Shown here in pieces: positions 29,899 through 63,666 of a DNA stretch of 64,000 nt. Position 1 is the first letter of the stretch; the number at the start of each line of letters is the position of its first letter. A model generated the notes under the pieces. That model did no database searches. It saw only the letters and a program-made list of their open reading frames with translations, and was not told the origin of the DNA. The position numbers and the translations under genes were made by a program. The stretch is taken from assembly GCA_964035545.1 (NCBI GenBank), contig OZ037771.1, positions 5,675,190 to 5,739,189 on the forward strand, read 5' to 3'. Source of the DNA: Bugula neritina (Eukaryota; Animalia; Bryozoa).

Positions 29899-32800
29899 AT
29901 GTATTACTGCATTCTAATCAGTTTGTTAGCTGCTGCTTCTGGAAGTTTCTTGTGTCCAAATGGAGACTACACATCTGCCGCTGTTCCCACTAGTGGTAAG
30001 TATATTTAGTAGTTGGTGGGAATTCAATAGGATTAATAGACTTATTTAGCCAAATCTATGCACAATTTTTGATTTGAGCATCACATGGAATCAGTTAAAC
30101 TAATAAAGGCTATATTAGTATTCCTAGTTGCTTTTCCAAGACATATACTTTATAATAATGAAATGCTATTTCTATAGTAGTAAATGCTGAGGTATTGCAC
30201 ATATGATATTTCAAATAACTTGTCTTGTGCAGTCCACAAGTTAAAAATTGGAGATATAAAAGTAGTGGCTGGTATGGGAGACTCAATTACTTCGGGGCTT
30301 GGAGCTAACTCTACCAATATGGCTGACATGGCAACCCAGTACAGAGGTCATTCCTTCAGGTAAGATGTCTGTTCTGTCACACACACCACCATTTGTGTCC
30401 ACCAACTGCTGTCTGCTAATCTGAGTCATGATATTTTGTAGTGTTGGAGGTGACTTATCTTATAAGGACCAACTCACTACATTTCCCAGTAAGTGTTTCT
30501 ACATTTCTTAGGTTTGATATTTATATATATTAAAAGTGAGAGTTATCAACTCTTAGTGATAATTTTGGTACTGTTTCCTTCAATACGGATATATACAAAC
30601 GATCTTTCAGCTTTTCATAAGTTGGGTACTGTTTAGAATCTGAGTTGGATTAACTTGGTATTATACAGTACCTGGGCTGGTATAACTTGGTACTATACAA
30701 CATCTGGGCTAGTATAACTTGGTACTGTACAATATATGGGTTTGTATAACTAGGTACTACACAGTACCTGGGTTGGTATAATATGGCACTGTAGGGGTGT
30801 CACCAAAGGGTTACACCTTCTTCTATACAATCTCTTAGAAACTTCTAGCTATAATGTTCTGACTAAGTTAACCCAGTATACTGATTTCCAGCAGATGCTT
30901 GTCATTCTTGTTTTTTCAACAATTGAACATTTCAATACGCACATAAACGCAGTCCTTGACGTCAAATGTTCATCATACAAGTGCCAAATATTTTTAAATT
31001 GGTTAAAAACGTGTATTTTAACTAGAAAAGCTATGAAGGTATTTCCAGTTTATCCTAGTTTGATTTGTGCTTTCAGATATACTGAAACTATTCAATCCTA
31101 ATATTTATGGGTTTTCCACTGGCACTGGGGATGAAAATACACCAAACTCTAAGTTCAATGTTGCCCAGTTTCATGTTTTCTCTAGGTGAGTTCTGTTTAC
31201 TTCTTCTCAACCTTTTCTACTAGACTATCTAAATATAAGATGCATTGGTTGAAGTGCTAATGAGAAGTTGTCTGTTCTAGTGTGATGCCTTCTCAAGCTG
31301 ATGATCTGGTCAAGAAAATGAAAGCTGACTCTAACATCAACTTTGAGAATGATTGGAAAGTTGTGACCATCTTCTGCGGTGGTGCTGACGTCTGCAAAGC
31401 ATGTGGCAATACAGTAAGTATATCCTGTTTTATCTTGCAGTACTCTTATATTACTCTTGTATTAGTCTTGTATTACTCTTATATTACTATTATATTACCC
31501 TTGTATTATTATTGTATTACTCTTGTATTACTCTTATATTACTCTTGCATTACCCTTGTATTACTATCGTATTACTCTTTTATTACTCTTGTATTACTCT
31601 GATACTACTCTTGTATTACTATTGTATTACTCTTGTTTTACTCTTATAGTACTCTTGTATTACTCTTATATTACTCTTGTATTACTATTGTATTACTCTT
31701 GTTTTACTCTTATAGTACTCTTGTATTACTCTTATATTACTCGTATATATTACTCTTGTATTACTCTTATATTACTCTTGTATTATTCTTGTATTACTAT
31801 TATATTAATCATATATTATCATTATCTTACTGTTATATTACTCTTGTATTACCTTTATATTACTCTTGTATTATTCTTATATTGTTCTTGTATTGCTCTT
31901 GTATTGCTCCTGTATTGCTCTTATATTACTCTTGTATTACTCTTACATTACTCTTGTGTTACTCTTGTATTACTATTGTATTACTCTTGTATTACTCTTG
32001 TATTACTATTGTATTCCTCTTATATTACTCTTGTATTACTCTTGCGTTACTCTTATATTGCCTAAACTAATACTCTAGGTGAGAATAATTATGTTATGAA
32101 ATTAAGAGTGATTCTGAATATTTAGACATGATGCTGTTGATTTAATTTAAAATAATGCTGTATTCTATCTTACTGGCAAATACTCACAGAGATATGAGCC
32201 AGTTTCCATATCTAATCATTCAAGCGAGATGCTATCCTAATCTGTTACTTTAAGGTTGTCATTTGACATTAAAGATTAGTTATTAACATAACAATTATCC
32301 AACATTATATAATATCACTAATAAAAATAGATAACTGTTATTTCATTTATCCAGACGCAGTTTCCTGCTTCCATGTACAAAGAAAATATTGAAGCAGCTT
32401 TGGACATTCTTTACCAGAAGCTGCCCAGAACTCTGGTGAACTTTGTACAGATCTTTGATGTCAACAAGATAAGAGAGATGATGGTTTCTGATGATAGATG
32501 TGCTCATGCTTTGGGGCAAGTTTTTTCTAATAGCCGATTCATAGTAATAATCAGTATTTACCTACATATTAACGTATGTGAGCTCGCGTACGTTAGTAAA
32601 AGCTTTCAAACCATATTGTCAGCATTTAGCCCTTCTTTAAAAACCTTTGTAACCAGGGGTTCTAACAGGGGTGGAGAGTTTAAACTAATCTGTGAATTTT
32701 TTCAACATGATGGCAGTGCACAGCATGGTAAAATTGTATCATTACTTGATGGTGATGAAATTGCGAGAGCTAAATGAAATTGCAGCGATGGAGAAATTGA

Positions 32801-34669
32801 GAAAGGCTTGTGCTCTAAATTTTATTTGTAGTAAAATAATTAATTTTTGTGTGAGAATGTCAACCTGTCCCCCAAAACGAAATTTATAGAAAAAAAAGAG
32901 CTTAGGCTGTCTTAATTTCCCCACTACTGCATCTAAATAGAGAACTAGTAGGACTATAATTATACCCTTCTGGTCCCTGTAGCGTTGCGGGTTGTTCTTG
33001 TCCACTTGAGTCGGACGGATCAGAGATGACAACTATGTCTCAGGAATACACTCAGGCTATTGAAGATTTGATTTCCACTGGGAAATACGATTCAAGAGAT
33101 GACTTTACTGTGGTGATTCAGCCCTTCCTTCACGACATGTCTATGCCTCTACTTCCGGTAAGAATATATCTATATGTCTGTATCTTTTATGTTGTATTTG
33201 TATTTTATTGCAACTTTTTACCATTTTGGATAGATAACACTTTTTAACATCATTATATAGACAAACTGAATGCATTAGGAGGATGCTTATCATGAAAACA
33301 GAGCAACCTGTTATTATCATATCTTTATAGCCCTTTCCCTTATTATTGCTACTTGTACTGTTGTATCCCTCAGGTTTCAATAGCATGTTTTTTTGAATGC
33401 ATAATGTAAGATTACCATCAATGAGAAAAAGGGTTACCAGTTATAAAACTATTTATGCGGCAGTATCTTGTAAATTATGTATGTGTACACATATATATTA
33501 TTTATACTCGTATATCTATGTATAATTTCATATTATATACACTGTATACGTACACATGTATATTTAAATACTTTTATATACATTTGCATTTGTATATGCA
33601 CACTTTTATATATGTACACATTTGTTCCTTCACGTGGAATATTTGCAACATGGATATTGGCAACATTAAATGTGAAGCACATATTGAGTTTATTTGTATA
33701 AATATTTTGATAAGCTTGAAAAACTATTGCATTGCAAAATTGTTAGTTGGATATTTTACTACAAAACTCATGGCCAGTGGGTTATTACATTCATAAAATT
33801 TATATAAATACGTAGATCATGGAGTTTACAATTAAAATGATGTACTCTAAATTCCGTTCATGAAAACTAACTTTAACTTTAGTTGCCAGTTGCATATTAG
33901 ACTATCTTTTGGTAAAGCCATAATTTTTGTTAAATTTTGTAGTCTGGAAAGTATGATCTGTCTTACTTTGCTCCTGACTGCTTCCATCTCAGCTCTAAAG
34001 GACATGGTACTGCTGGCATCTCTCTCTGGGATAACATGGTAGAGCTGATATACTTCAATTTCTTTTAATTTAGTTGCTACTGTAGAATAATAGATGGTTG
34101 TGACAATTGTAGTGCTAACTTTACCAGACAATATTAAGATAATAAAATATAATTGTAACACTTATAGCGGTTACAGCTATTTTATTATTAAACAGATAAC
34201 TGCGTGGTTGAAGTATGCAGCACCTGTCATGAAGTGCTGCTGTGTGATGTGTACATGTAGCTTGAGATATTGACGTAATGATGGAAGTTTTTTAATATTG
34301 GTAATTCAATTTACTCCTTGTAATTCTTCGTATAAATTTATATCAAGCACCAATTGCTTCAGTTTTAAACACCAGTTCCATATTTGTATTTTCTTTTCTC
34401 ATGCTAATTCAAAATTATGAATTAGTGCTGTTAACAAGCTCAATCATTTAGTGAATAATTTTGTAGATGCAACCGTTATCTGCCAAACAGACAGACATTA
34501 GTCATAGCGGCACTCCTATTTGTCCAACGGTGAGTTGAAATTTTTATATACCCCAATAATCAGACTTCAATCTACACTGCTAGTCTTACTTTTTAAAATT
34601 ACTATAATTATTTTCTAACATTTTCAGACTGAATATATACCTACAAGGAAGAATGGTGCCAACATGTGA
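29899..34669 (+). CDS. Phospholipase B1-like single-domain GDSL/SGNH lipase, copy A (~349 aa, secreted; triad intact, oxyanion residues substituted)
   Basis: Exons 29899-29995, 30233-30359, 30442-30488, 31077-31185, 31281-31413, 32355-32515, 32983-33157, 33943-34038, 34467-34529, 34628-34669 (1050 nt). Signal peptide [15 protein letters not shown]. Motifs [63 protein letters not shown]. Confidence 0.92.
30645..30792. repeat. ~31-bp degenerate intronic minisatellite
   Basis: Units like GTATAACTTGGTACTATACAACATCTGGGCT occur 4-5 times. Confidence 0.8.
31425..32065. repeat. 11-bp satellite (TATTACTCTTG)n filling much of intron 5 of copy A
   Basis: Dozens of degenerate units; these generate the spurious Leu/Tyr-rich ORFs in all three forward frames. 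Confidence 0.95.
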
Positions 34670-37600: not shown

Positions 37601-37732
37601 GAAATAACTTTTATTGAAAGGAGTCTCTATATCTAAAACTATTAAAGCAAGTTTGATATGCATGTTGTATAAACATGCATACTGTATTGTTTCAGTAGGC
37701 TAGTTGTGATACTTAAACATTTAATAATGTAG

Positions 37733-40700
37733 ATGCTGACTATTGGCTGGATTATGCTTGGCATGGCAGTGCTTGCTGCCGCTGAAAACACTTTGTGTCC
37801 AGATGGAGACTATACGTCTGCAACTGTCCCTACTAGTGGTAAGGAAAAATATTTAAAAATACTTTATGTAAAGGTATAACTTGCAGCAAAATAATATAAG
37901 CATAGCTAATTATATGTTGCTATAATATTATGGTTTCATTTAATATCTAAGCAACTGCAAAGTGTAGGTAAGTTACCAAACACATTAATGAATGAAAGCT
38001 AGATGTTCCAATAATTACCATATTCAACTAAAAATGTTTTCCTACTTACAAAGACACAAAATCTAAAATTTGAAATCTTTATATATTTTAATCTTCCAGT
38101 AAACTAATTTATTTGAATACCTAACTAAAAGAATAGTTTTAAAAATGAGCCTTGTTTACTTTGTTTTAGTTCATAAGTTGAAAGTTGGAGATATAAAGGT
38201 GGTGGCAGGAATGGGTGACTCTGGTACAGCAGCTAATGGAGCTGAATCTACTGAGCTATTTGATATCATGACTCAATATAGAGGCAGATCTTTCAGGTAT
38301 GTTTTTAAATGCCACATTCTCACTGAAAAAAAATTCATTTAGTTTTATTCATGTATTTTCTAAGCACTATAATTATACTGACTATTGCACTGCTGTACAG
38401 CTTTAGCTATGGTTTAAAGGATGTATCCTCTGATTTTGTAGCGCTGGGGGTGCTTCTTCCTACAAGGATGGCCTAAAAACTCTGCCGAGTGAGTATTTAA
38501 TTATTGCTCTCATTAACCAAAATCTTTAAATATTCATTTATTTTCATTCAGTCAAATATTATTCCCCATTAATAATTTATTAATATTGCAAAAAGTTTAA
38601 TTACAATTGAAATGGCTGCTTTTGAGTCATTGTAATTATTTTTACTATATTATATTATATGCCCTTAGCAGTAGCTGAATATACAACTTGAGGCTATGTA
38701 ATACCAACATAAGACTTTATAATGCAGACATGAATATTTGTATTATTTATTAAATATTATAAGTAAGGTAATCAAAACATTTTAAGCAGTTATTTAGTAT
38801 GGTTGAGCTTCTATTACTTACCAAGTTAATCATTGGTATAGCTAAACATAATTCGAACATAAATTTTGGTACTTGTAAAGGTGTCATTTTATTCCAACAA
38901 TTTTCAGTAAAACTAGAAAATAGTACAAGTTTGGATGAGATAGATTATTTAACACTGGGTACTTTTTTGGCAAAACTGTAAACAAACTGTCACTCACAAA
39001 TATCAAAGAACTGGATAAGGTTACAAAAAGTGTTGATCATTACTATCGATACTATATACAGTATACATAATCTTACTACAATTGTAGCACAATCAGCATA
39101 TGATAAAAAAAATTTGTTTGATGTTAATGTTTTTGTGATTTATAGATATTCTCAGACTGTTTAACCCTCGTCTCCGTGGATACTCAACTGGGGTGGGTGA
39201 TGAGAACTCTCCCACAGCCAACCTGAACGTTGCGCAGTTTGGTGCTCTTTCTAGGTAGAGTCTCTCGAACAATGTTTCCCCTTCAAAAAGTTAATGTGAA
39301 TTTAGGCAAAAACATTGAATTAGGCATTAATTGGTTTTTATTTATCAAATGTTATATTAGGCACAAACAGAGCAAGTCCTGCAACAATGTAAATCAAGTA
39401 AAGCGATTTTTGGCCGACTAAAATTTTCATAAAGCTATTACCATTTTCAGTAAATTGTGAAAATATGAAACTAAATATTAAGGTAATTAGAAATATCAGA
39501 GGGCGTTTTTATAAGGTCACCCTTGATTTGTATGCATATATTTCATAAGATGATATATAAGTTAAACAGTATAATTCTATTTCAACAAAATATTTTTATT
39601 ACAAATTTTTCTATAAACTTGCCTACTAAAACATATCAAAATAGCTAAATGGAAAAAAAGCATTAAGCATGAAGCTAAAACTATTTCTACCATATTATGT
39701 TCAAGTCAAATGAAACTTCAAGCTGAACTTCTTATCAAGAGAATGAAAGCTGATCCTAAAATAAATATTGACGAAGATTGGAAGATGGTAACCTTGCTCA
39801 CTGGGGGTAATGACATCTGTCGTGCCTGTGGAAATGTGGTAAGTGCTGAATTTCATTCAAACTATATTTTCCAATATTGTCAGCTCTCTCACGCACACAA
39901 GTTTATATTCTCTGTAAGAAAGCTCTGCTAGAAAAGCTAAAGATTTATTCATATATGTGGCACAAGAGCAATCATGGCTAAATGCTCTTTCTTTGTTGGA
40001 GCTCGAACCCATGACTTGGTGTTTGCAAAGCCAAACACTCTAACACCTAGACCAAGGCCGCTATTTTACAGTTTTCAACTTTTAATATCTTGTTTTGCAT
40101 TCAACATTTATTTATTTATCCTTTCTGTTATAAATAACTCATTTCCCTTTTAACTGAAAAGGAACTATTTTTTTAAAAGAGAAAACAAATATTGCTTAAA
40201 TTATCATTGTTTTCGTAGTCTCTCTATCCAGCCTCTATGTTCCGGGCTAACATTGAAGCAGCCCTCGATGTCCTGCAAGAAGGGTCACCTAGAACCATAG
40301 TTAATTTGCTGGAGGTATTCGACATCACAAGTCTGATGAAGGTTATGCCTTTTCAACCACGCTGCCAGGAAGCTATGAAGTCAGTACCTTAGTACCTGAT
40401 AATTCATATTCTAAAATTCAATAATTGTGTGCAATATATAAAGTTTGTGAGTATATGAGTATATTTGCAATTTATTCTCTTCAGAATTAAACTCTGCCCA
40501 TGTCCACCTGGCTCAGATGGCTCAGAGTTGTCTGCTCTATCCAAGGAATATCAAAGAGCTCTGGTAAATCTTATCAACACCGGGAAGTACAACAGGAAAC
40601 CAGATTTCACAGTCGTAATACAACCCTTTCTTGGCAATGTTCCAACCACTGAAGTAAGAATTTATTTTCATTTAATAACACTTTTTTCAAATTGAAATTC

Positions 40701-41520
40701 AATAGCCTTGAGCAAAAACTCACAACATTTTTCATGTATTATGACATTTCGTGAATTTTTAGACTGGTGAACCTGATATGTCTTTTTTCACCCCTGACTG
40801 CTTCCACCTGAGTACCAAAGGACACAGTGCTGCTGGAGTTTCCCTCTGGAATACTATGGTTAGTTTAGTATCTTCAGCATGCTTTCATACTGCAAATCAT
40901 AGCAACAGCAAGTAGTAATATGCAGAGCATAGCAATAAATCGTAGTTATTATATATGTGTGTGTGTGCGTGCGTGCATATATATTATCATATTACAATAT
41001 TATATTATTACAATGTATTACAGCTCCGACGTAAGTCTAAGAAACACAGAGCTTTTAATCATCCGGAACAGCCCATGTGTCCAACAGTAAGTTGTGCTGC
41101 TAACTTTTTAGTATCAAATAGTTTACCAAACTAATTAGTTTAATGTTCCATAAAACGATTAAGACTAGATTCGACCTGTGAAAAGCCTTTATATTTTTAA
41201 AACAATAAATTATAATATCTTATATATTAACATATGTATATCCTATGCACTATACAACAAACTATATCTAATAGTAGCACATTTGTATTCTATAGTACAC
41301 TATAAAATCCTATATATTACTATGTTTGTAATACACTATATAATAATATTCTACGTAATATTAACATTTATATATTAACATGATTATATTAACTATATAA
41401 CAGTATCTTATATATTAGCATGTTTGCGTTGTATACACTATATATAACTATAATCTCCAACTTATTAGAATGTGTGTGTTTCAGACAAGGTATATTCCAA
41501 CACAAGTGAACTATTCATAA
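37733..41520 (+). CDS. Phospholipase B1-like single-domain GDSL/SGNH lipase, copy B (~348 aa, secreted; canonical active site)
   Basis: Exons 37733-37838, 38170-38296, 38442-38488, 39146-39254, 39706-39838, 40219-40379, 40485-40653, 40763-40858, 41024-41086, 41485-41520 (1047 nt). Blocks: GDSGT (Ser), NVAQFGA (Gly), TGGND (Asn), PDCFH (Asp/His). Confidence 0.93.
39948..40063 (-). mobile_element. tRNA-derived SINE (family 1), internally deleted
   Basis: GAGCTCGAACCCATGAC…CTCTAACACCTAGACCAAGGCCGCT matches the head of 272-450. Confidence 0.7.
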
Positions 41521-42989: not shown

Positions 42990-45900
42990 TCAACTTGAAA
43001 ACTGTGAGAAAAACAACAGCAACAAGGACGACCATACAATAAAGACATATTGTGAGCTCTTCAAGTTGATGCCAGCACTGGTTGTGGTTGGTTTTGGAGT
43101 TGTAGTTATAAGATCCACCATATTAATACCATCCAAGCCTGTGCACGCATAGCTAATTCGAGTTGGTACATATTCAGTCTAAAACATACATAAAAACACC
43201 AGATATAGAGAAATAAAATATAAGTTAGTTAATTACATCAGCTCTATCTTTAAACTATTTACAAAAATAGCTAATGAATGTAAAGAGTTTACAGAATTGT
43301 TTTGTTTAGAAAACAAATTATTATAGTTTGTGAAAATGCAAGTACTGCTCTTAGATCATTTTTGCATTTAGGTTTTGAAATTGGCATGATTCTGTTATAT
43401 TAACTACTTAAAACTACTATTTTTATGGTATATAGCTACTAATCAAGCTTTTGAAAACAAAGAGTTGCATTACTAGTTTTATATGACCTGAAGTTTTTAA
43501 TTTGTAAATCTGATCAAATTCTACTTAACTTTAGCACATTGAAGTTACAAAATATTATTTATGATTCATTGGAAAACCGCTAAAGAACTGTGATATACAT
43601 ATATATATATATATATCTTTCTGCACCTCATACAATATTAGTTTTTAAAGTGTCTTACAGTATTAAGAATTTCGTACTGGTTAACAAAACCGTGAGCAAA
43701 AATGTCAAAGGTCAAAGTATTTTTTTATACTTACAACTGGACATCTAGGAAAGTCTCTAAAGTCAATTTCCTTTGACTGCATACAGGAAGGCATCAACTG
43801 CAATATAATTCAAAATCTTTGTCATACTAAAACAGCCCGCGTAAAAATTACTCTTGATTGTAAGCCAGGCTTTTAAACTGGTTTTTTAATACAGTAAAAG
43901 AGGGATTACATAACTGAATTCCCTTCCTAACATGACTAATAGTTTTAACTAAAATTACAACTTCTGACCTTGTGTTTTGACTGAGCCAGTTCTCAAGCCA
44001 CTAGACCACAGAAAGGTAAGACTAGCATAAATAGTATTTGAAGCAATACTCGTAGACTTGAAATATTTTATTATTATTTTATAACAGCTAGTACCATATT
44101 TAGATTTTTGCATAGTTACAAAAGCAAATATTTAGTATTTGATATACCAAGCTGTTCCAGAGTGCAACGCCAAACTCAAACTGCCCTCTCATTCCCAAGT
44201 TGAAACAGTCAGCTGAAAAATATCGTGCATCCGCTACTCCGTCCTGAAAGCACAAAAACAATAGTTGCTAAATTAGAACACCAATTCTCAGTACTAAATA
44301 AAGCAACGCAATACAAAAACAATCATAATGTTTCAGCTTTCTTTTAATTTTTGTTTTCACAAAAATGTTGTTTTTAAATTTGGACTGTTATATTATTTCA
44401 TTATTTAGGCAGTAATGATATTACAATAACATTGAGGTATTCCATTATATAGTGGGTCTTTGAAACATTGCCTTGCTTGTTATTCTTTGTTGCTGCAACA
44501 TTTAAATTAATCATCAAGCAAAATTATTTTTGTTCAGAAACACAGACTATACGCATGCTGATTATTGAGAAAAAAAATTAAACTACCAAACTAGAAGTAT
44601 TAGAAGTCAAAGTTGAAATGCCCACTTGTTTAAATACTTCAAATAAATAATGTAAGTCAGCAATAATAACTCTATAGTCTGTGCAATAGATGACATGAAA
44701 GTATATATTATATTATATTATATTTTATATCATATATCATATACTTTCGCTCTTATAGAAACTTTACACAAGCAGTAGACAATTTACACTACATTCCTTT
44801 TTGATTTCTCTATTTGATTATAGGTAAAGCAAAAAAACTCAAAAGTTAAAAAGCTGACTGTAGCTGAAATACTTAGCTTCACGAATTGTATTAGTAACTT
44901 GTAATTTGCTAAAATATAATACTAGTATATTTCAAAATAAAAGCTGTATTAACTTGTAACAGATACCGAGTTAAGGGGTGCCTTGAACTTGTTGAGAAAT
45001 TTATGAATCTTTACAGTAAAGTTTTGTTTAACATCATAAGCTTCAGAATAGACAAGGCTTTTAATGGCATTTCTGTATTCGTCGATCAAAGCTGGCTTTG
45101 CAGGTTTTTTACATATGCAACCATTAGACCTGTAAATAAATAAGAACTAAATTTACTTTTAGATGAAGTATATTTTTTTAAAATATTTGTCTAAAAACTG
45201 CTTTTCCATTCAAATAATCCTTGTCTCAATATACCCTGTAACACATGCACATTTATAGCTGCAACTACTTTATATAGAAGTAAGCTTATATTAGGTAGGA
45301 CAAGACTACAATAAAGCCAAGCAGCAAGTTAAACTTTATCCAGGTTGACGTAGCACCATACAAAGTGGTTGCAAAAGCTAAACCTAAAGAAATCTTTTAG
45401 TAACAAATTTGTACAAAAATGAAATGATTTCTTCCTTGATATCTCGTAGATGTGCACATCTATATAAACGCTTTTTTGTAGAAACAAAATCATATTATGC
45501 TAACAAAACAATGATAGAGTCAAGTAACAAATAGATTTGATCTAGAATAGAGCAAATTGGTATTGTAGATACATGAATGGTTAGTGAAATCTGTGTTGAT
45601 ATAGCTAGATGATAAATTCCCTAAACTCAAACTACTAGAAATGTGAGTGGTGATATAACTTACTTGAGTTTACTTATACAGTGAGGGTTGCTCTTCATTT
45701 GATTCATCATATCATAAGCATCAAATGGTTCTATCAAGTTCACCATTGTCATTGGCAAGTTCTTAAGGAGCAGATCAAGGGCTGCCTTAATGTTGGCCTT
45801 GTATTTTGGTGCGGAATATTTATGCTATAATTATAAAATACAATCTGAAACTGAAAAGTTTAGGCAGTTTAGATATTTATAAAATATATGTTTTAAAAGC

Positions 45901-47690: not shown

Positions 47691-47727
<37 letters not shown>

Positions 47728-49069
47728 CCACATATATACCACATATATACCACATATATACCACATAATATAGCAATTATTATTTATTACCTGGAAACAG
47801 AATATCTTTCAGCCACATTCAAGTTGGCTTTAGATTTACTGGGGTCAGATGAGATAGCTACACTGAACCCTTGCAAGGAAGGGTTAAATAGACTCAATAA
47901 ATCTGCAATAATTAATTATATTATTACTTCAACTTCAAAGGGACACTTCAGTATGTTATGTCGTCAATTTTATTTATTAATCATAAACTAATTAAGTTTT
48001 ATGAAACTTTGAACAATTGCTCCGGTTGCAATTTATTCCACAAGTGCTATTTTTCATAAACAAAAGAGTATAACTTTACTAATTCTAGCTACAGCTTGTA
48101 GCATAAAATTAATGAAGAAAATAATTTTTAGAAAACAAGGTTAAACATCGAATAAATACTAGTACTTACTGGGTAAATTCATAGTTCCTTGGTGGTAAGT
48201 GGAATGGCCCCCACCACTATAACAAGCAAATCATTGATAATTAAGTTACGAGATGAAATTTTATTCACTTTAAAAAGTCCATATCGATTATTAAGAACTA
48301 AGTTATACAGCAGCTCACCTGAACGAATAGGCTTTAAACTCCTTTGCCATATCTTCTAGCTCTATTGCACCGGCTCCATTGGCAGCAGTAAAAGAATCAC
48401 CCATGGCAGCCACTACTTTGATGTCTCCAACCTTCAATCTATGAACTGAAATACAGACATGTTATAGTTCTTAGTTAAAACTATGTTAAAAATAAAGGCG
48501 CTGAAAACAATCTTTTTTATGGTGACAATAATGCTAGCTTACAACTCGTATAATATACATGTTTGTTGAAAATTAAATCTATGCGCTTGTGCTAAATCTG
48601 TATCTGATAATATTATTATCAAACTGTAACACTTCAAGCAGCTAAAGACATGAAACTATATACAAATTCAAAAGATTTACAGAATTAAATGCTTTTTATA
48701 TTTTGTCTTTTACTTACAACACCAAGGAAAAATTTATGTAATTGTTGTCTCATAAACGGATATGTGGAACTGCTGATGAATTTTGCATTTAAATTTTTGC
48801 AACTTCGTTTATTGAAGAATAACAACACAGGTACGTGTGATTTGAATAACTTTTTTATTGCTAAGTGTTTGTGTACTATAAATAGTTTCAGTACATTAGT
48901 TAACAGTTTGGGATTATGTTATAAGAAAAGTTTAGAGTTTATACTAACCACTAATGGGGGTTTTGTCTTGGACAAAAGTTCCTGGACAAATAATGTTTCT
49001 GCTCCCAGAAACTCCCAATACCATTATTTGGATACATACGAGTAACGTGAATGTCCATGAATACTCCAT
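42990..49069 (-). CDS. Phospholipase B1-like single-domain GDSL/SGNH protein, copy C (~403 aa; catalytic His replaced by Asn; putative GPI anchor)
   Basis: Exons 48949-49069, 48319-48445, 48170-48216, 47791-47902, 46838-46970, 45664-45824, 44967-45129, 44148-44243, 43735-43797, 42990-43178 (1212 nt). Signal peptide MEYSWTFTLLVCIQIMVLGVSG. Motifs GDSFT, NVAERYS, VGTYD, SADCFN. C-terminus TTTPKPTTTSAGINLKSSQYVFIVWSSLLLLFFSQFSS*. Confidence 0.92.
43880..44010 (-). mobile_element. Degenerate tRNA-derived SINE (family 1)
   Basis: Remnant motifs CTTCCTAACATGAC…GCCACTAGACCAC. Confidence 0.5.
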
Positions 49070-50920: not shown

Positions 50921-51679
50921 TGTGACAGCCAATAATTGTTATTGTGTCAGCAAGGATGTTGACTGGCAGGGATGCATATGCACAGCACGGATGTTGTATG
51001 CTGGTTGCACAGATGCACAGATGCAGGCCACAACTCTACCCTTTGCCTAATACCAAAAGTTTATTTCTCTCACAAAACTCAAACTTAAACAATTATTTGG
51101 ACAATAAATTTTAAGTTGCCTGCAACTATACCAAGAGGAAAAATTAAGCTATACAGACTCAAAAACTACCAGTAAAAATCTTATGAGAAAGCTCTCACAA
51201 AAAGCTTTCATCACACAATACTTTTCTTAAAGTTACAATTCAAAAAGCACCTGCAACAGAGACACATAGGAAAACTAAGAGCAAGACGTAAGGCTAGGCT
51301 AAGCTCAAAAGACACTCAAATAAATGATGACCTCTGATGCCAACACTGTGACTGTATATGCAGGTCATGACTAGATTCTGAGGTCACCAAGCAACACTAG
51401 AGTAATATACTAGTAGACGTTTCACTCTATTCAAAGATATAACAGTGAAAAGAGAGCTTTAACTTCTTATACCTACATTAGTTCTATTATTTTCATTCCC
51501 TCTAGAAATTGTAATTATAACTGGAGCCAATTTTTTACTTACTTTTTTGAAAAATACATTAAAGACACAAATATTGTGAATTGAAGTATCATTATTTGTG
51601 TAAACAAATAGAAGGAATAATGAACCTCTTTTAGCTGAAGATATTATATAACGTAACTAAGCGCAAAAAAACAAGATTA

Positions 51680-52643
51680 GGGGAAACCTGGGTGATATGG
51701 GCCACTTAAGCCCACAGCCCAAACTGACAATGTTTGATTGAAAATTAGTATTTCAACATGTGGGTGCTATCTCTACTGACATAAAAACAGAATTTGAAGC
51801 TCATAGACAGATGCTTGGCTGAGCTATAATTGAAAATTGGTGGACCATATCACCCGGAGATCTTTTGAAATTTCGGGTGATATGGGCCACCACAGACTCC
51901 GTCACATAAAGTCAGCTTTTTTGTGTTGAAAATGCATTTTGCTATATTAAAAAGTGACATAAAACAGTAGATTTAAAATAAGTGTGAAACAGCTTCTTTT
52001 AGTGCGTCCTAACTCTAAGCATTTCAAATATTTTTGGAAGAACATCTTGGCATCTAAAATACATTGCATGAGTATGAATATTTCAAGCACACATTCTACA
52101 GCAACTGGCTATAATGTTGTCTAATCAATATTTAGGGGTTTAATGCTTCATCATTGTTTGAAATACTTGAGAAATAGTATTATTTTTCTCAAACAAGTAT
52201 GTGAAAAGAAAAATTCAATTTGCTGAGTAATATGGTCCACGGTCCATATCACCCCCAAGTGGCGGTCCATATCACCCAAAAATCATGTCCCCAAAAATTT
52301 TGAATTTCTACAGACAGAGAGTGGACAAGTATTATATATACTATTTGGGTATTTATAAATACCTTCCACACATTATCTGTAGATACAGGCCCCTTACTTC
52401 AGGTAATTTTTTTCAATAAAATATGTCCACAAAAGTTGTGAAAATTTATAAGAAAATGAGCAAAAAGAGAAAATGTGTCTTTATTTTCTAAGACAAAGAG
52501 ACAAGTTTGAAATATGTAGACAGGAAGTTAGATATTCCTATTTTTAAACAATAAGACACTTTTCAACTTTCTGGTAACCGTGGATACTGCAAAACATGCA
52601 TGGTCCATATCACCCGGGTGGTTCATATCACCCAGGTTTCCCC
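51680..52643. mobile_element. MITE/non-autonomous DNA transposon, Tc1/mariner-pogo type, 964 bp
   Basis: TA|GGGGAAACCTGGGTGATATG…CATATCACCCAGGTTTCCCC|TA gives a perfect 20-bp TIR and a TA TSD. Internal copies of the GGGTGATATGG(A/G)CC motif occur in both orientations. Confidence 0.88.
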
Positions 52644-55600
52644 TATATAACATTTGTAAAACTCAAAACATAATTTGAATATTTTTTGCATTGCATAGCT
52701 AGTTTGACAAACTATATGCATTTTATAATAGCATTATAAATTGAGCTTTACTGAAACATTATATGATCACCTGCATGGTTTCTTTTAATAAAGAACTAAC
52801 TAAATTTGAATTGCATTATTATATCAACTTATGTTTCTGCCATAGTTAATAGTAATATATTATAATATAATTCACCCCTTATAATATTTTTATATCACAA
52901 AAAACTGCAATACAGAAGCTACGACATAATAAGTTTTATTGTACACTTCTATAATCTCTCATTTCCACTATAGGTCATATATTATTTTGCAAATAACAGA
53001 TACAGCTGATTTAGACAGTTCAAATAGTTAATAATTGTTGTGCATTACCATGAAATAGAGATGCTGGGAAAAGAAAAACTACCTGAGTTATAATTATAGT
53101 ATGATAGTATCAAAAGCATATAATATTTTAAGATGATAGTGGTTTCAAATTTAAAGCAGCGAGAAATTATAGACTTTAAACTTGTCTAAAAACCTTAAAG
53201 ATCAAAATCTCCAGAAGTGTTTTTAATATTATTATATAGTAGTGACCTGTAATAAGTATTTCTGTTTATAGGTAACTTGTTTACTTAGAAATGGCAACAT
53301 AAATTGCTATGATGAGGAGACTGTAAGTACAGGTCTACAAATACTGTAATACTCAGTAACACAGGGTATAATGTAAGATATCATCAAGTAACTATCAGTT
53401 TGCTGTTTACAAGAAAAACGACTGACCCAACGTCGATGTTCAGTTGCATATCATAATAATATTTATTATAGTGTATGCTATATTATAGTGCTTTATAGTC
53501 ATATTCTACAACTAAATTAGCTCTAAAAATTATCTAAATGTAGAAAAATATGCAATGTAGAGTTAGAGATCCAGATAAGGCTTAATAAATATTAAGGAGC
53601 AAGATAAATGTGTGCTGCTAAATATACTTAAACTGACAACTCCCATTAGTTTGTAATGTGCATTTTATTTTTGAAAATTAAAACCATATTATTATCATTT
53701 AACATATGACTGCACTTGTTTCAGTATAAGGCTGCTATAATTGTGCTGAAACCCATCTTAGGTATAAATGTCCACTTAAGTTACCTTTTGATCATGGAAC
53801 ATAAGTTATTATATATTATAGAGGATCATGCCATAAAACAAATTGTAAAAAATAAGTGTGAGTAAAAATAAATTTGAAAATAACATTTTGATACAACTAG
53901 TTTATTATTTTTGCTAAAAATATGTAAAAATAGCGAGTTATCTTGCCTAACTCATAAAAACATAAAAAAATAGATTCTTGTTACACTTATCCTATTAATT
54001 TGTCAAAAGTTTGCAATATTTTTTTAATTTTGGCTAGTAACTAATACAATCATTAATTTCAACAGCCACAGTGTTTGTATTTTAACTTCATTTTATAAAA
54101 TTGACTACCTACCTATAAACGTTTAATACTGTTCTACATATTTTTATAGGAATTAAACTATAGATGAACTGAACATTAGATCAAAATGACTAAACATGCA
54201 TATATCAGCATCAATTTTAAAAAATAATTTTTTGATCAAGAGGTGCTCATAATTATGTTAGATATTATTACTAGCAGAGCAGTCATTAGCTAAATGGTGT
54301 TTGTTGAGTATATATAGTAACCATTTATAACACTGTATTTTTTGTTGTATACGGATACACCTTTTATAAGCCAGCAATGTCCAAAAAATTAATTATCCTT
54401 GCAGCTTAAACTTTTTATTCTTTTCAATGCTGAAGAAGAAATATGCAAACTGAGATACCTTAAGTGCCCTAAGTCTTTTACAGTGCATACAGCGCAGTCT
54501 TACAATATAGCGGCTTAGCAAAAATATGTGTTGGGGAAGAGATTAAGTTAAATAGCAAGTTAAGTAAGTTGCTCTAATACTGCCTATTTTCCTTAATGCT
54601 TGATATTCAATTAAGTACACTGGGTTATTTCTATCTTCCTACAAAATAATTGTTTTACAGTTTCACAATGTGCTTTCTTTGTATATATTTGCAATTTTAT
54701 GTTAAGTAGGACCGTGTTATTATTTTTGTTGCAAAATGTGTGTTGTAGAAATGTAAGAAGTGAACCTAAATTAAAACAGGTGCAAATATTTAAGAAACAG
54801 GATACTACAAGTAAAAGCATGATGCTATGCACCAGCCTTGGTTACTATAATGTCATATGTTATAAAATACTGACTACATTTCATAGTGCAAAATATTCAT
54901 TACTTTCAGTACGTCGCCGTTGAGAATCTTCACCTTCATGACCAAAAACCTTAAGCTGCAAAAGCATAAACAGGGAAGCTGCTTTCGTTTCTGTTGATAT
55001 ATTTATCAATATCATGATTTTCATGTCGTTGCTGCTGGCAATATTGAGTATGTAAATGAAAAGTTGTTATCAATTAGTCTTTCACCTTTGAGTTAACCAA
55101 TCTTTTGCAATATTTGCCACCACATCTTGATGTTAAAGTAAAAAAAGGCCTCAAACTTGCATTAACCTGCATGTCCAACTACTTCTTCCTCTTCTTTCAA
55201 CTTCTAAAGTAATTTAATTGTTCTATTGCCTGAGAATTTGTTTTCAAACTTGAAACAATTTGACTTATACATACAGATTAAATTATCTAGCTGTGTTTAC
55301 AATAGCAAAGAAGACCAGTTTAAATTTTACACACAAATTATTTGTAAATTTTATTGATGGCTATGGTAGGTAAGCATGATATAACTTTAACAATGAGTTA
55401 TAATAACAAATTGCATCACTAAGAATAATTTTTTAATAATGTAACAAATTACTCTAAATCACCTATTCAGGTTCAGCAAATCTTTAGTCTGAACTAGTTA
55501 CTATGTATTCAACTAATTCCTATATAGCAAAAATGAAAGTATGTTCAAAATAGTAAATAAAAAAGTTCCAAAATATAAATCAATTGCTAATTAGTTTATT

Positions 55601-55863: not shown

Positions 55864-58800
55864 TTATCTGCTGTTCACTCTCGTTGGAATAAATGGAGTC
55901 TAAAATAAATGCAAGTGGGATGACATTTGTAAGAAAAATTTAATCTTCAATCATACTTAAATATGATTTGCTAACAATAGATCAATGAAAATATTTAAAT
56001 TAATTTGTTGAAAAATGTACAAGATCCATAGCATAAGGATAATTTGTTATTTAGCAATTTGTGAACCTAACTGTATCTATAGCCTACCTCTAAATGCAAG
56101 CAAACAGGCATATTTAAAATCATAATATAATATATAAATATAATATAGTATAATATAATTATATAATGTAATGTAATATAATATAATCTAAACTCCCACC
56201 TACAAAAATATCTTGTCAATTATATCATGATTGACAGCATTTACTGTAGCTGTGAGATTTGTTCTCAGTGCACTGACTATCCACACAAACTTGTTGACCT
56301 ATTTATTATATAGTTAAATCTTACTGTAGGACAGTTAGGTGAAGCTCCAAAATCCACATTTGTCTGTTTACGGGAAAGAGGCTGCAGCTGAAAATAAAAA
56401 AACATTAGCTATTTCATAACAGAGAAGCTGTTTGCAGGGCATACAAAGTTCAAATTAGTACTAATGATACATATGTTGAAACCTGGCTTGCCAAACTTTA
56501 TTTTAATTTTGAATATTGTAAGAATGTTTACTGGAAGCTTAGTAAAGCAAAAAAAATACTAAACACCAAAAGATTTATATGAAAATGTTTTTGCATAGTA
56601 TTCACTAACATGAAAAGATTTTTCTGTACAACTTGGATGTCATACCATTGTGTTCCAGAGAGCTATTCCAGCAGCTGAGTTTCCTTTAGTAGAAAAATGG
56701 AAACAGTAGGGCAGAAGTATAGATCGATCAGGCTTCCCATTCTAGACATAACATGATAAAAATCATTTCTTCTAACAGAAAGCTTGTGAATAATCCTCAA
56801 CAATATGATCTTAGTAAAATAGACAATAATTTTATCTTGGCTATTTATAAAAACAAGTTTAGAGTAAGAAGTGTTGTAATTTCCCACAGAGGAAGTGGTG
56901 GGCATTGGATTTTGGGAGAACCGAATAGGAAATGTTTTTTCGATTTGCTTATAGTCTCCCTATAGTGTAGTGGTTAACATCTCTAGCTTGCAGTTTGAAG
57001 GTATGAGGTGGAGGCAGAAGTTTTTACAAAGTTTAATCTCAACTCACTGCAGTGGTGGGAATAGTCAAATTGCTAAGGAAAGGCTGGTGAACAACTGTGA
57101 AGTCACTAGTTGTGTCATACTTCCTACTGTCAATCAACTCCAGGAGAGCTTTGTAATACTGTTGTGCTATAGGTGTAGATAGAGAGCTGTTCTGGTTCTT
57201 ATCACATCGACAATAAATAAACCTAAAAAATGTCAACATGTTAAGTAAAGGAATCACTGATGAAAAATTGAATGTTATTAGAGCTCAAAGCATTATATGT
57301 CTTATATTGAAACATTTGAAGCAGTTTTAAAAAATGCTCTATATTAGTTTTAAACTCAAATCACACAAATACATTTTGAATGGTTATACTTAACTCACCT
57401 CAAGTTATAGGAACATAAATGACTTGAAGGACAAGTATTTTTAAACTTGTTAAGATCAAACACTCCTACAACGTTTACTAGAGCTCTTGGTAGGTGTTGC
57501 TGTAGATAGTCCAGGGTTGCTTTGATATTGGCTTTAAACCTCTCTGCAGAATTTAAAGGCTGGAACCAAAACAAAAAAATTGTTTCATAAAATAGAAACA
57601 AACATTCTACATGCTTTAGGTTACAATTATCTTTTAATATAAAATCTGTTGTTGAAAAATTTAATAATTTTATAGAACTTCCAACTGCAATAGTTCAAAA
57701 TCTTTTTGATAAAACAATAGTTATTTTATCTAATAATCAGTTTCAGCTACAAAATGTGTTTGTTTATATTAATTAGCTAGTTTTAGTTATTGATAAATAT
57801 TTCTAGAACCATAAGATTATTTTTAAGTATCATTTTACTCATAGCATTAATATTTCAATTAAGACTAATCATGTATAGTATGGAAATGTTTGTATTACAA
57901 TAAATATCACCAGATAAATTGTAGCTTTTTAAAAACAATTAGTTCAAAAAGTATTATATTTTAGTTGGTATTTCACTGTTTTTAGATTACCTTAAAATTT
58001 ATTTATAGTTTTGAAACAATTGAGTATTTTAGCACAGATGTTATTGAATCTAAATGTCTATACTGCAACTTAAAGCTGCTCTTTATTTTGCCAATTTTTC
58101 TTGTTGATGTAAAAAGTAATATTTTTAGGTAAATTAGTAATACAGCACTACATGTTTATATAAATCTCCGTTACCAACGGAGACTGAAACAGTACAAACA
58201 AGTTATTAACATAATGTGGCATTTCTCTTCTAAATAATATGCAATTTTACGAGTTATACTTCAAGTAATTAAAAGTTACAATGCACATTTGGAAAGCAGG
58301 TATGTTTAGCCAACAATAATACAGAAGACTTTCAACATGCATGTTGCTGCAATTATAACTCTACACATAGTAATACTTTTCACATGTACATACACTTGAT
58401 GGGTCTGAGCATGCCCGGCAAATGTCATTTCCTCCTATCTGCAGCGTAATTACTTTCCAGTCTTCTTTAAAATTTATATTCGGATCAACTTTCAATTGCC
58501 TGACTAGTTTTTGAGCTTGATGCAGCATCTCACTGCAAAGGTAGCACTAACAGTGTTTGAAGATATTTTCTTTTATCTTTACAATATAGAATAATATTAA
58601 CATTTGCAAGTAAAACTTTATACTCAAAGAAATGTGTTGCGTGAGGAATAGTGTGATGTAGCATCTTATCTTTCTGCTCATAATTTTCTATCTTCTTTAA
58701 AACAAGTTGTATTAGCTGCTGTGTGCTTTCTGAATCTTTATTCAAAGATTATGAAAAATTAAATAACTTAACACATTTTTTTAAAATATAATTTTTGAGC

Positions 58801-61800
58801 AATTATGGTAATAAACCATATGCATGGCTTTCATGGTTGAAGCTTCAAATAACTCTAAAACTAGGCAATAAGTAGTGCAGTATTACGTAATCAAAGACAC
58901 AGTTTCCTCATATATACACATTATTCAGAGTTGTCTTCTCATACATATGGTACAACACAGGAATAACAAAATTTACCAGGTGCATCTAAATGATTTTACT
59001 ATTTATTATATTGAACCAAGGTTCTCACTTGTCCTTTTTAAATTATTGATCAAAAACACTTTCATTTTATTTTATATACCTGTGCCATTGGCTTATAATA
59101 TATGATAATGTCATAATTAATATTGCCTTTATTAATCATTATTTAATAATTAAATATAGTTAATTATTAATTAATAATTATTGTGCTATAATATACTTAA
59201 TTTTTTTCATACTTAGTCTTATAAGGTAAAGAAAGCTAGGAAGTTGAGCAGAAATAACTTTTTGAAAAAGTCTTGTGAAAAGAGATTGGCAAACTGCAGC
59301 TGATAAATGTGACATCTGTCAGTTGGTAACTGCATGTTATGACAGCTGATGCAAGGTATATGTCAGTTAATAACTGTTACTTATGGCAACTAATAGAAAG
59401 CATATGTCAAAATTGGTACGGCTGTCATATGTCCCTACCTGACTGGAATAGCAAACTGTGCTATGTTTAGATTGGAAGCATCAATAGATTTGGGGTACCT
59501 GTTAACAGCATACCCATACAGATCTGGATTGAACAACCTCAGTATGTCTACAATATATTAAGCAGCTATACATGTTTGTCCATTAACTTATTTTGAGTTA
59601 TGCTAAGCTAATTGTTTTTACACAGTACAACAAATAGATTACCTTATAAGCTATAGTATATTTCTTAAAATTTAGCTAATATTTGAATTTTGAAATAGTG
59701 TAAGGCATAAAAATATTTTTTTAATTTAGCATTGAAATATGTGGGTTAGGATGCATTCAAAATAACCCCAACAGAAATTAAGTCAAATATATTATAATTA
59801 CTATTAAGAATGAAACCTCTACTAGTACCTTTGTTACAATGGGCTTTTACACATAGGTTATAATTACAGTATAAAACAAAAATACCTTTCAAGTATATGC
59901 TGCAAATGTTATATCACGTGTGTTGTTTACTTACTGGGAAATGTTGTAATGTTGTCACTGAATGAAGAATACCCTCCTGCACTACAACATAAGCAGAACA
60001 TCACAATGCGCTTAGTTATATGCAACTCCAATGTGACTGTAATATATGATATGTATATAGGTTGTAGACAATACTATCTAGCAAGTAACAATTATATAAT
60101 ACAAAATACAAAACTATTTCTAACGATAAGAGTGTAGGGGCCGTTTGTATATTATGGTGTTGATGGTATTTTATTGGTGCCGTAAGTCTTGACTGATGCC
60201 ATAAGGCAACGTGAAAACTTTAATAGTAATGTATAAAACAACATGTTAGTAAAAATATGCAAAAATATATAATAAGTCACCAAGTTATTGTCAAACAATT
60301 AAAATTTCATATTCTGTTAAAATGCAAAGATACTAGTAATTATTAAGAATAACTGTATTACCTGATTGGCTCTACTAGTTCTATAAAAACGGCTGCACTG
60401 GTCATGGCTCTAGCACTTGGCCTACCATGGCTAGGCCAAGTCTAGAACCAACACATGTGCAGCCTGCAAAGCCTTATATAGCTAGCTAGTTTACAAGATG
60501 TGTTGGCTAACATAACAGCTAAAAACAGCTGTGCTAGTTCTATGGAAAACAAATATATAGCTGAATTTTAATGACAATAGGTTTGACAAGCTAAGTATAA
60601 ATAATTTATGAATGCATTTTCAATACTTTGTTTTCTATTTATTTTTACTAACATGAGTTACAAAAGGTCCATGCTGGCCTTTACAAAAAGTGTTTACAAA
60701 ATAATTATTATCAAACAGCTTTATAGCTACGGAGGTTATAATCTATAAATATCTACGGCTGTTCAGATGCTTTAAAATTAATTAGGAGTCTAATAAATAG
60801 TTTAATATATTGTGGTTAGCTGAGGAGTGCTTTTGGTTTTTAAAGTCAAATATCTCATTAACAGAATTTGCAATCTATATTATCTCCATATTTTGCACCA
60901 TGACTTAGTGAGGAGGTTACAGTGAAAATAACATCAACATTACTAGCCTGAAGTGTAAATAATTTAGATAGGAGCAGACAATTTCATCAAACATGGGCTT
61001 AGCAGTTTATGAAATGTCTTAAAAAGAAATTGGGACTTTGTTTCAAAACATTTAAAAAATTGAAATGATTATAAGCAACTAATGTAAGTAAAAAATATTC
61101 AAACTCATAAGTAATAACATGGCTGTCATTACAATGTGCACGAGGTATTGATAACAAAAAGCTCATTTTCTTGCATGGTGCCAACAAACTTTAAATGATA
61201 TTAGGATTAAGATTTGCACTAAATACATTGCAAAAATGGTTTAATGTTTTCATCACACAAACCGAAACCACATCTTACAGCATTTTTTTATTTTAGTTTA
61301 TGTAGCTAAACAGCAACTTTCTGCAGTAAACTTATATAAAATTGTTCAATCTTATATTCACTGATATCTTATGAATTTGTGTTGGTTTTTAAACCTTTTT
61401 ACTAAATAGCTAAGCAGAGAAATAGTTCTTTTACATTTTAAAAACGCAACTTTGCTCAAAAAAATGTATATGCATGTTAATAACAAGCCTTATGCAGACC
61501 GAGCTGCCTATGTTAAGGGCCATAGTTCTAGCAGGCTCGCCATGCTGCTGGTGTCGAAAATATTAAAGGTTTTATGTATATAGAAGTAGCACAGCTGCCT
61601 CTTGATTGAGAAAGAACTCCTTTTGCTGTGATACTCTGACAATGCAAAAAAGCGAAGTCACAGCACCGCAGCTTTCAAACGTATAGGCATTAGCGTAGAG
61701 CTATTTTGTACACATCATGGTTGCATTCTTAAAATCATTTTAGCTTTTTATTTTGTATCAGTTCATGTATTTACCTGAAAGAGCGGCATATGCGATATGG

Positions 61801-62711
61801 TAAGTATACAAGTTCATCTACACATGCTATCACATCTCCGACAATAGATAAGTCTCCTATGCCAGCAACTATTTTAATATCTCCAACTTTCAGTTGATGA
61901 ACTGAAACAGTAAGCATAGAAGGAGGTATACACACACCGATAAAGTTTAAGCCAATTTTGAGTAATTTTTGTAAAGCATTTGGTGCTTAATTAAATGTAG
62001 CTTAAAAGTTTGCTAGAGGACAGGCCATGGTGTAGTAACTATAGAGAGAACAGTTAATTACCTATAAACATGAGACTGTAATGAAAACTTAAACTGTGTT
62101 TTATTTATAGCATAATAGTATCTGGTTAGATGGTTCTTTAATATAATGTAGCCTAAATTTTTTTTAGGTAATTTCCAGAATTGCAAGCAATAATGATGAA
62201 CTATATTCTTCAAAACTCATCAAAGTTTTCCAGCTTGCTTATATAACTTTGAGCATTAAAATAACAATAATTAATATGACTTATTTTTGCTCTCCTAAAA
62301 TTACAGCTAGTCCACTTGCACCAACTATTGCCAAATGCCAGAAGTATTTAGTTAGCACTGGTTGTGCTGTTATAGAAAGCTTTTCTTTGTAAGTTCTCAA
62401 TATAGTTAACATAGCTAAGCTAACTTACACTTCACTACAGACTCACTATTGCCAACCTGTCATCAGACAGCATTAACATTAGTACCAATGCGCCTTTGCT
62501 ACTTTTGTTTTAGAATGACCTATTGTCAGATATAATATAAGGTTGCATTGTTTCTCAATCAAAATAAATGGCACTCACCACTAGTTGGAACAGTTGCTGA
62601 CGTGTAGCTGCCATTGGGACACAAGACATTTCCATCTGTAGCTGCTATCAAACTTGTGACGATGTAACAGATCACAATGCAAACAACATTTTGCTTCACA
62701 GAAAAAGCCAT
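55864..62711 (-). CDS. Phospholipase B1-like single-domain GDSL/SGNH protein, copy D (~361 aa, secreted; nucleophile Ser replaced by Leu and catalytic Asp by Tyr)
   Basis: Exons 62579-62711, 61775-61901, 59935-59981, 59439-59547, 58394-58532, 57399-57559, 57048-57222, 56646-56741, 56325-56387, 55864-55899 (1086 nt). Motifs VAGIGDLSIV, NIAQFAI, IGGND, LLPYCFHFSTKG. Confidence 0.92.
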
Positions 62712-63545
62712 CAGTAGGATCTTGGGGAAATTTCTTATCAACGTCTTCAATCTCAATATTCAGTGAAGGTAGATTAATAAGATTTCACTAGATGTCACCC
62801 TTAATATTAGCATTAGATGCTCTATACCTGATACCCATCATTTTAGAAGGTCATGTTTCTTAGCTATGATTGGCTAATTGACATTTTAACTGTACAAATA
62901 TCTCTATGCAGATTAGAGCTGTAGTCAAGCTATCAGCAGTCTAGTGTAGTACTAATGTATATCATCGAGTTTCTAGAATGTTACAATTACCCTCCAGGTA
63001 GTCTCGCAAGGCTGTGACTTTTTTTTAACTTAAGCCCACCTTTCTTCTAATACAGAAAGAAGCAGCTACTCATGTAATTATATAAGACCCCTGGTGTTCA
63101 TATTATAACAGCATCATATAGTCTTTGTTTCTTGTAACAGCATTGAGTCAGGCAACTAAAATTGACAACTTATACTCTTATATATTGAGGTTTGATCTTG
63201 TTAATTTTTATTTTAATACATAACAAGTATTGCCATAGTTTGCTTGCAGGTTTATCTTAAAATGTACAATTTTTATAAAAAATAGTTTGTTTAAATACCA
63301 TGGTGTTATATACATTTAGGAGTGTTCATATTTTAATTTGTTATGCTATAAAAACCTGTACGTTCACTTTATCCAAAATCAAATTGAACCTTACAGCCAT
63401 GGTGTATATTTCATATTTAGCATGGAGCATTTCTAATCTTTATTGTTGGCACTAATTATTGCTAATAATTTATTGATATATTTCAACATAAGAGAGTTAA
63501 TTATTTAAAAGATTTCTTTTTTTTATTAGATTATTCATATTGCAG

Positions 63546-63666
63546 ATGGGTTTTCCAGCAGATCTGTTAACTACTTTGATTCTTGTTGGGCTACTAACGC
63601 CATCTGCCTGCTATAACTTCTGTAATAGTTCGAGGAAATACTTGTCACTCCACGTCCCTACAAATA
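63546..63666 (+). CDS. First coding exon of a probable fifth PLB1-like paralog (copy E), continuing beyond the window
   Basis: MGFPADLLTTLILVGLLTPSACYNFCNSSRKYLSLHVPTN|gtaagt shows a signal peptide, a Cys, SxxVPT and a phase-1 donor, the same layout as exon 1 of copies A-D. Confidence 0.7.

Follow-up and report, generated by a model that had tools for sequence, protein, structure and literature searches.

A stretch of 64,000 nucleotides from the 216 Mb genome of the bryozoan Bugula neritina (C7:5675190–5739189, referred to here as the window) contains four complete genes, A–D, and the first exon of a fifth, E, each for a protein with a single PLB1-type domain of the GDSL (SGNH) lipases. The explanation that we favour, with a probability of about 0.6, is that they belong to a lineage-specific, birth-and-death expansion of a single-domain PLB1-type lipase in Bugula, in which the fold has been kept and the active site has been diversified stepwise. 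The cluster is made up of eight tandem genes, A–H, of which E–H run past the window to C7:5774562, and three copies are found outside it, I (C9:7.887 Mb), J (C9:10.573 Mb) and K (C7:15.095 Mb), which brings the total in the genome to 11 full or near-full copies (exon 1 of K was not recovered, and a gap of Ns lies nearby). Seven of the eight clustered genes are altered at catalytic positions, and the Asn of catalytic block III is missing in six of them.

The models of A–D were assembled from splice sites, and Bugula database searches were run exon by exon. Each modelled gene has ten exons, with identical intron phases (1,2,1,2,0,2,0,0,0) and zero internal stops, and the introns have GT donors and AG acceptors save for one GC donor in intron 6 of A. 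The genes are separate units with their own start, stop and downstream AATAAA, using both strands. Pairwise identities among the four are 35–55% and synonymous sites are near saturation (dS, the synonymous divergence, is 1.4–2.5), while the eight cysteines of the family are kept in every copy, D having three extra. A reading made earlier from the letters of the window (the original prediction) had described four intact ten-exon paralogues with identical phases and open frames, exon 1 of a fifth gene, and the motifs of blocks I, II, III and V in A–D; the genes could be rebuilt from splice sites, the exon was located and the motifs read as claimed. It had also proposed that the proteins have signal peptides and are secreted, features which, like the putative glycosylphosphatidylinositol (GPI) tails, were judged here by Kyte–Doolittle hydropathy and alignment. 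All of A–D have a hydrophobic N-terminus, with a 12-mer peak of 2.2–2.8 in what is a hydropathy check rather than a signal-peptide predictor, but C, with its Thr-rich stalk and GPI-like tail, is not plainly secreted.

Family membership is supported by exon-wise matches to Lipase_GDSL (PF00657), at 25.7 bits for exon 5 of D (cutoff 23.6) and weakly for exon 5 of B and C (E ~0.02), and by scores against a local family hidden Markov model (HMM) of 422, 390, 293 and 325 bits for A, B, C and D, respectively, with blocks I, II, III and V in order. Relatives of the window exons occur in related contigs at 79–89% nucleotide identity; exact look-ups of eight window exon frames gave no match, and a search of the ESM Atlas gave weak leads only. 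As a proxy for the fold of the Bugula proteins we used a model of a natural homologue, P0053, with a confidence (predicted local distance difference test, pLDDT) of 93. The nearest solved structure to this model is acyloxyacyl hydrolase, AOAH (E 5e-10, template modelling (TM) score 0.44, 15–19% identity), a match which, at the level of a model, confirms the SGNH fold and says nothing on substrate. Sequence searches of the Protein Data Bank with exon 5 and P0053 returned noise only and thus yielded no solved structure of the family.

Active-site states across the family

In SGNH enzymes the Ser of block I attacks and the His of block V acts as base, with an oxyanion hole formed by the backbones of the Ser and of the Gly of block II and by the side chain of the Asn of block III (PMC9487903). 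Changing Ser, Asn or His to Ala kills the activity of S. rimosus lipase, which tolerates Ala in place of Gly II and a missing acid in block V (PMC10779480). Written in the order Ser I/Gly II/Asn III/Asp V/His V, the canonical state SGNDH is found in B and in all three of I, J and K. Gene A reads SHADH, with the triad intact, Gly II replaced by His (31172–31174) and Asn III by Ala (31384–31386). Gene C reads SYYDN, with Tyr at Gly II (47804–47802), Tyr at Asn III (46867–46865) and Asn at His V (44201–44199). Gene D reads LANYH or SANYH, in which Gly II has become Ala and Asp V has become Tyr (56708–56706), with Asn III and His V kept. Beyond the window, E reads SGYDH, F reads SGHDH and H reads SNADH (the block II register of H is uncertain by one residue), and G reads E-HDQ, with Glu at Ser I, most of block II missing, His at Asn III and Gln at His V; exons 3–4 of G have been deleted in frame, and all of its cysteines and splice sites are intact.

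Position by position, the block I Ser is present in A, B, C, E, F, H, I, J and K, lost in G and alignment-dependent in D; Gly II and Asn III occur together only in B, I, J and K; and the Asp-x-x-His of block V is present in A, B, E, F, H, I, J and K and broken in C, D and G. Three of the 11 copies (C, D, G) therefore have a broken or doubtful triad, and four more have an altered oxyanion hole. The earlier claim that B is the only standard lipase holds inside the cluster, but I, J and K outside it are canonical too, and the triad is kept in E, F and H.

This variation stands in a near-invariant family. Of the outside single-domain homologues, a set biased to conserved orthologues, 104 of 107 read S/G/N/D/H, and with a profile made from the Bugula copies the block III Asn was missing in four of 120 motifs, two from Bugula relatives and two in poorly aligned segments. 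Within the clade, catalytic positions were changed in 15 of 45 cases compared with 18 of 255 at equally conserved non-catalytic positions (Fisher p 7e-6, with copies that are not independent), which bears out the earlier view that the non-canonical copies are each hit at the active site.

Two trees were made, a quick version of 36 rows and a careful version of 18. Genes A–I and K form one clade (support 100/100), and J lies outside it among ordinary homologues. C, D and G do not group together and need three changes on the tree; a single origin fits less well without being rejected (p 0.09 in the approximately unbiased test, p-AU). Asn III is missing from the whole C/G/H/E/F group (support 94/91) and, separately, from A, an arrangement of sequences that suggests an order in which Asn III was lost first, His V later in C and in G, and Ser in G. 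The longest branches are those of C, G and D.

In the history that we propose, the canonical J would have stayed put and a duplicate lineage would have given rise to the tandem array A–H, the dispersed copies I and K and a number of 3′ fragments. E and F stem from a recent duplication (dS 0.18), in which exon 1 of D and the 834-bp region between D and E were copied along; the resulting orphan D exon 1 (~1890–2170 on the minus strand of L002, C7 ~5.750 Mb) is ~91% identical with its flanks included and is without the conserved Pro after the first Cys. Fragments of the 3′ ends of I and K are found at C3:8.972 Mb, at C9:1.775, 1.787 and 1.798 Mb, and at C7:15.081 and 15.095 Mb. Some of these contain stops, and those on C9 are ~11–12 kb apart, a spacing which suggests capture inside a larger repeat.

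The single-domain form is not itself a peculiarity of Bugula. PLB1 proteins of one domain are on record for Capsaspora, sponges, rotifers, annelids, molluscs, echinoderms and amphioxus, so that one domain per gene is the widespread form of PLB1 and probably its ancestral state. The suggestion in the original prediction that separate genes for the repeat unit were special thus falls away, and a derivation of the window genes from split vertebrate PLB1 repeats was rejected on the same grounds.

Selection on the altered copies and the loop of gene D

Ratios of non-synonymous to synonymous divergence (dN/dS) were obtained as Nei–Gojobori counts on partial exons. Against a related genome (L014, SRR4020083; overall identity 83%), exons 5–6 of C show a dN/dS of 0.19 at a dS of 0.30 over 97 codons, and the block III Tyr of C is kept both there and in a second run. 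Judged by these codons, and not by that of His V, C is under purifying selection. So, on counts against JGI contigs, are E (dN/dS 0.11, 188 codons) and K (0, 94 codons).

For D, three public runs, all of genomic contigs, were compared over 56250–62050. The exon variants listed comprise five synonymous and two non-synonymous changes (p about 0.01–0.06), exon 6 diverges by 6.7% as against 13% in the DNA beside it, most of which is intronic (p 0.01), a haplotype that is 9.5% divergent spans exon 2 gap-free, and among the indels listed 12 of 12 are intronic. Taken together these patterns are suggestive of purifying selection on D. The same region is highly diverse, with two haplotypes ~6–8% apart in one run and the other two runs 7–13% from the window, a diversity consistent with a species complex.

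The original prediction had argued that the divergent copies are not in simple decay. We agree, with C not near a dN/dS of 1 and D varying mostly at synonymous sites with an exon half as divergent as its surroundings, and we regard as improbable the alternative of slow decay, in which C, D and G would be redundant duplicates that have yet to acquire a stop and their catalytic changes would be early pseudogenisation. Such decay would fit the long branches of C, G and D, the debris that the family yields (the orphan D exon 1, and on C3 and C9 the pieces of the 3′ end of I, some of which contain stops), the absence of exons 3–4 from G and the drift of the changes in the D loop toward AT-rich hydrophobic codons. 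It is at odds with the dN/dS of C and its fixed block III Tyr, with the synonymous bias, less divergent exon 6 and intronic indels of D, and with a deletion in G that is in frame and leaves cysteines and splice sites whole.

The loop of D concerned is a heavily diverged stretch of 25 codons after the GD of block I, which reads GD-L-S, with Leu at 61851–61849 and Ser at 61848–61846. A family HMM built on 100 sequences aligns D as S/A/N/Y/H, with the Ser in the catalytic column at a posterior of ~0.8; an ungapped alignment places the Leu there; and the two registers are alike at the DNA level (7–11 versus 7–12 of 27 bases, other paralogues giving 16.5). Either a substitution of Ser by Leu or the insertion of a Leu before Ser is compatible with these alignments. 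A pair of frameshifts in exon 2 was rejected because the alternative frames contain stops, and co-loss of a conserved Arg in C, D and G was rejected because it hinges on the register of D.

D would accordingly be either a secreted pseudoenzyme or a Ser–His dyad enzyme with a remodelled loop. The second option, in which a Leu was inserted, the Cys-containing loop forms a new pocket and only C and G are dead, is otherwise compatible with the explanation that we favour, and we hold it to be possible if doubtful. The HMM register speaks for it, as do the retention of the essential Asn III and His V and the fact that the changed pair is dispensable in S. rimosus lipase, but the DNA backs neither register, the ungapped alignment gives Leu, and an extra residue between Asp and Ser would probably move the nucleophile out of place. 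Of the earlier proposal that C and D are both non-catalytic, the part on C stands, in that it looks like a surface pseudoenzyme, but D is uncertain, with Asn III, His V and perhaps Ser kept.

Predicted activities and known systems

Several observations weigh against a stepwise diversification with function retained, besides the bias of the outside set. Taken gene by gene, with losses counted over whole active-site blocks, the loss exceeds background for G alone (p 0.04). The change of His to Asn in C and the two substitutions of D are each seen in one genome, and each is possible by a single base change. Homologue searches gave no candidate orthologue of D exon 2 or C exon 8, and in two metagenome scans neither exon had a Bugula orthologue, the matches being canonical PLB1 of other organisms only. 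No splice joints at the D introns were present in the three genomic-contig runs. Finally, replacement of Asn III by Ala inactivated both S. rimosus lipase (PMC10779480) and S. aureus OatA (PMC9487903), and on that account A and H could be inactive.

Those two inactivations, with the absence of Asn III from most of the cluster, also form the case for a mainly lipid-binding secreted or surface family in which A, E, F and H are dead too and B is the sole working enzyme of the cluster. We think this unlikely, since E/F and H have held Ser, Asp and His over 1.2 and 0.9 changes per site, respectively, which is hard to explain without catalysis, and since several active SGNH families use other oxyanion donors, among them the active enzymes PatB1, SASA and OatA, in which the donors have been replaced (PMC9487903).

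In the diversification that we favour, B, I and K would be (lyso)phospholipases of the ordinary kind, either secreted or at the surface. Given the triad that they keep over long branches, A, E, F and H are most likely still active, and would be acyl hydrolases or transferases whose oxyanion hole has been rebuilt and whose substrate range has shifted. In A and H, which lie on different branches, a polar block II residue (His and Asn, respectively) is predicted to face Ala III and may stand in for the Asn donor, which makes a donor swap possible in both. C and G are likely pseudoenzymes, because His V is missing from both and its loss kills S. rimosus lipase; they would be held at the cell surface by a GPI-like tail that they inherited, and most likely bind lipid or ester substrates without cleaving them. 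The tail of C, a Thr-rich stalk with a hydrophobic end, aligns with those of G, I and K and is homologous to them. Canonical copies thus share it, from which we conclude that the putative anchor predates the catalytic loss; a gain of the tail together with that loss was rejected, and surface anchoring is not tied to inactivity.

Intestinal PLB1 provides the analogy for the role that seems most likely to us for the family as a whole, namely that its members deal, outside the cell, with lipids of the diet or of microbes at the epithelia of gut or body surface. B. neritina carries a bryostatin-producing symbiont, and the nearest solved fold, AOAH, is a lipid A deacylase, two points that could favour an expansion serving symbiosis or immunity, in which active copies would trim or transfer the acyl groups of lipid A or of bryostatin esters made by the symbiont, and dead copies at the surface would bind these molecules. 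We consider this very unlikely: the AOAH match reflects an SGNH fold common to all PLB1 proteins, the saposin domain is missing, and a literature search found no paper linking a PLB1-type expansion with Bugula symbiosis. Slimmer still is the chance that the cluster is a host toolkit for acylated molecules of the symbiont (lipid A or bryostatin esters), in which A, E, F and H would be acyltransferases or selective deacylases and C and G would be GPI-anchored receptors or carriers.

The closest known proteins are the single-domain PLB1-like proteins of invertebrates and other holozoans (Capsaspora, Amphimedon, Owenia, Haliotis, Branchiostoma), which go by the name 'phospholipase B1, membrane-associated-like'. 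They share the domain, its cysteines and its blocks with the Bugula proteins, likewise have a single domain in each gene, and are secreted or C-terminally anchored; they differ in being almost uniformly canonical. Each Bugula gene is homologous to one of the four tandem repeats of the membrane-anchored vertebrate PLB1, but the Bugula copies are separate genes from an independent expansion, with partial and stepwise site changes. A four-repeat match of 1462 amino acids, P0001, which came without a name and which we take to be mammalian PLB1, has none of S/G/N/D/H in its first repeat, so the PLB1 family already provides a case of a dead domain next to live ones. AOAH is likewise an animal secreted SGNH lipase, but it has saposin and SGNH domains, whereas the mature Bugula proteins begin at the PLB1 domain. 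PatB1, SASA/CE6 and OatA, with their rebuilt oxyanion holes, are a precedent for A, E, F and H, and the Ser–His dyads of CE2 and S. rimosus lipase a possible one for D, both from unrelated families and as mechanistic analogies only.

Dead paralogues in expanded lipase families are already known. The plant GDSL pseudoenzyme At1g54030 of Arabidopsis is an example of a dead member kept in an expanded family (PMC4757993), and insect tandem lipase families retain members with incomplete triads (PMC9143690). Dead members make up ~3–4% of these plant and insect families, as against the 3 of 11 broken or doubtful triads, and four further altered oxyanion holes, in Bugula. What is unusual here is the density of altered genes and their graded states in so conserved a family; a literature search found no paper on this Bugula lipase cluster. 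The cluster offers a natural series of site variants on one scaffold (canonical; Asn lost; Asn and Gly changed to a polar residue and Ala; His lost; Ser and His lost), several of them under purifying selection by the codon counts above, which would allow a direct test of the route by which a hydrolase becomes an altered enzyme and, in turn, a binding protein. The family is moreover a candidate for the handling of lipids outside the cell in a bryozoan whose chemical symbiosis has been studied.

Gene models and other features of the window

Table 1. Lipase genes of the cluster and their parts (window positions unless a C7 coordinate is given)
Feature	Position	Strand	Length	Remarks
Gene A	29899–34669	+	349 aa	splice model
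A exons	29899–29995, 30233–30359, 30442–30488, 31077–31185, 31281–31413, 32355–32515 (GC donor), 32983–33157, 33943–34038, 34467–34529, 34628–34669	+
Gene B	37733–41520	+	348 aa	splice model
B exons	37733–37838, 38170–38296, 38442–38488, 39146–39254, 39706–39838, 40219–40379, 40485–40653, 40763–40858, 41024–41086, 41485–41520	+
Gene C	42990–49069	-	403 aa	splice model
C exons	49069–48949, 48445–48319, 48216–48170, 47902–47791, 46970–46838, 45824–45664, 45129–44967, 44243–44148, 43797–43735, 43178–42990	-
C exon 10	42990–43178	-		Thr-rich stalk and hydrophobic C-terminal GPI-like tail, by hydropathy and alignment
Gene D	55864–62711	-	361 aa	splice model
D exons	62711–62579, 61901–61775, 59981–59935, 59547–59439, 58532–58394, 57559–57399, 57222–57048, 56741–56646, 56387–56325, 55899–55864	-
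D nucleophile loop	61775–61851	-	25 codons	heavily diverged, after GD
D–E head-to-head region	62712–63545		834 bp	between start codons
E exon 1	63546–63666	+		head to head with D
Gene E	ends C7:5746870	+	352 aa	sites S/G/Y/D/H

Repeats lie within and between these genes. Intron 5 of A contains an 11-bp minisatellite of 57 copies (31433–32059), which is the source of spurious long open reading frames rich in Leu and Tyr. Intron 2 of D contains a high-copy repeat (~60130–60700) with a summed contig depth of 10–100 times background, and between C and D lies an element of 968 bp (51678–52645) resembling a miniature inverted-repeat transposable element, with 28-nt terminal inverted repeats and the same motif repeated internally.

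Directly upstream of A, at ~22000–28000 on the plus strand, is a retinoblastoma-family gene with an RB_B domain (E 3e-18). A multi-exon gene at ~5000–10600 on the minus strand encodes an RRM domain (a weak Pfam match), a Gly/Met repeat and a coiled coil, and may resemble ENOX1/2. Between the two genes is a foldback element of 3.7 kb (17351–21062), with arms of 986 nt that are 94% complementary, decaying inner arms and 24-nt termini, in which the frames are short and degenerate and have no Pfam match. A decayed long interspersed nuclear element (LINE) is marked by a reverse transcriptase fragment at 13066–13326 on the minus strand (E 2e-5).

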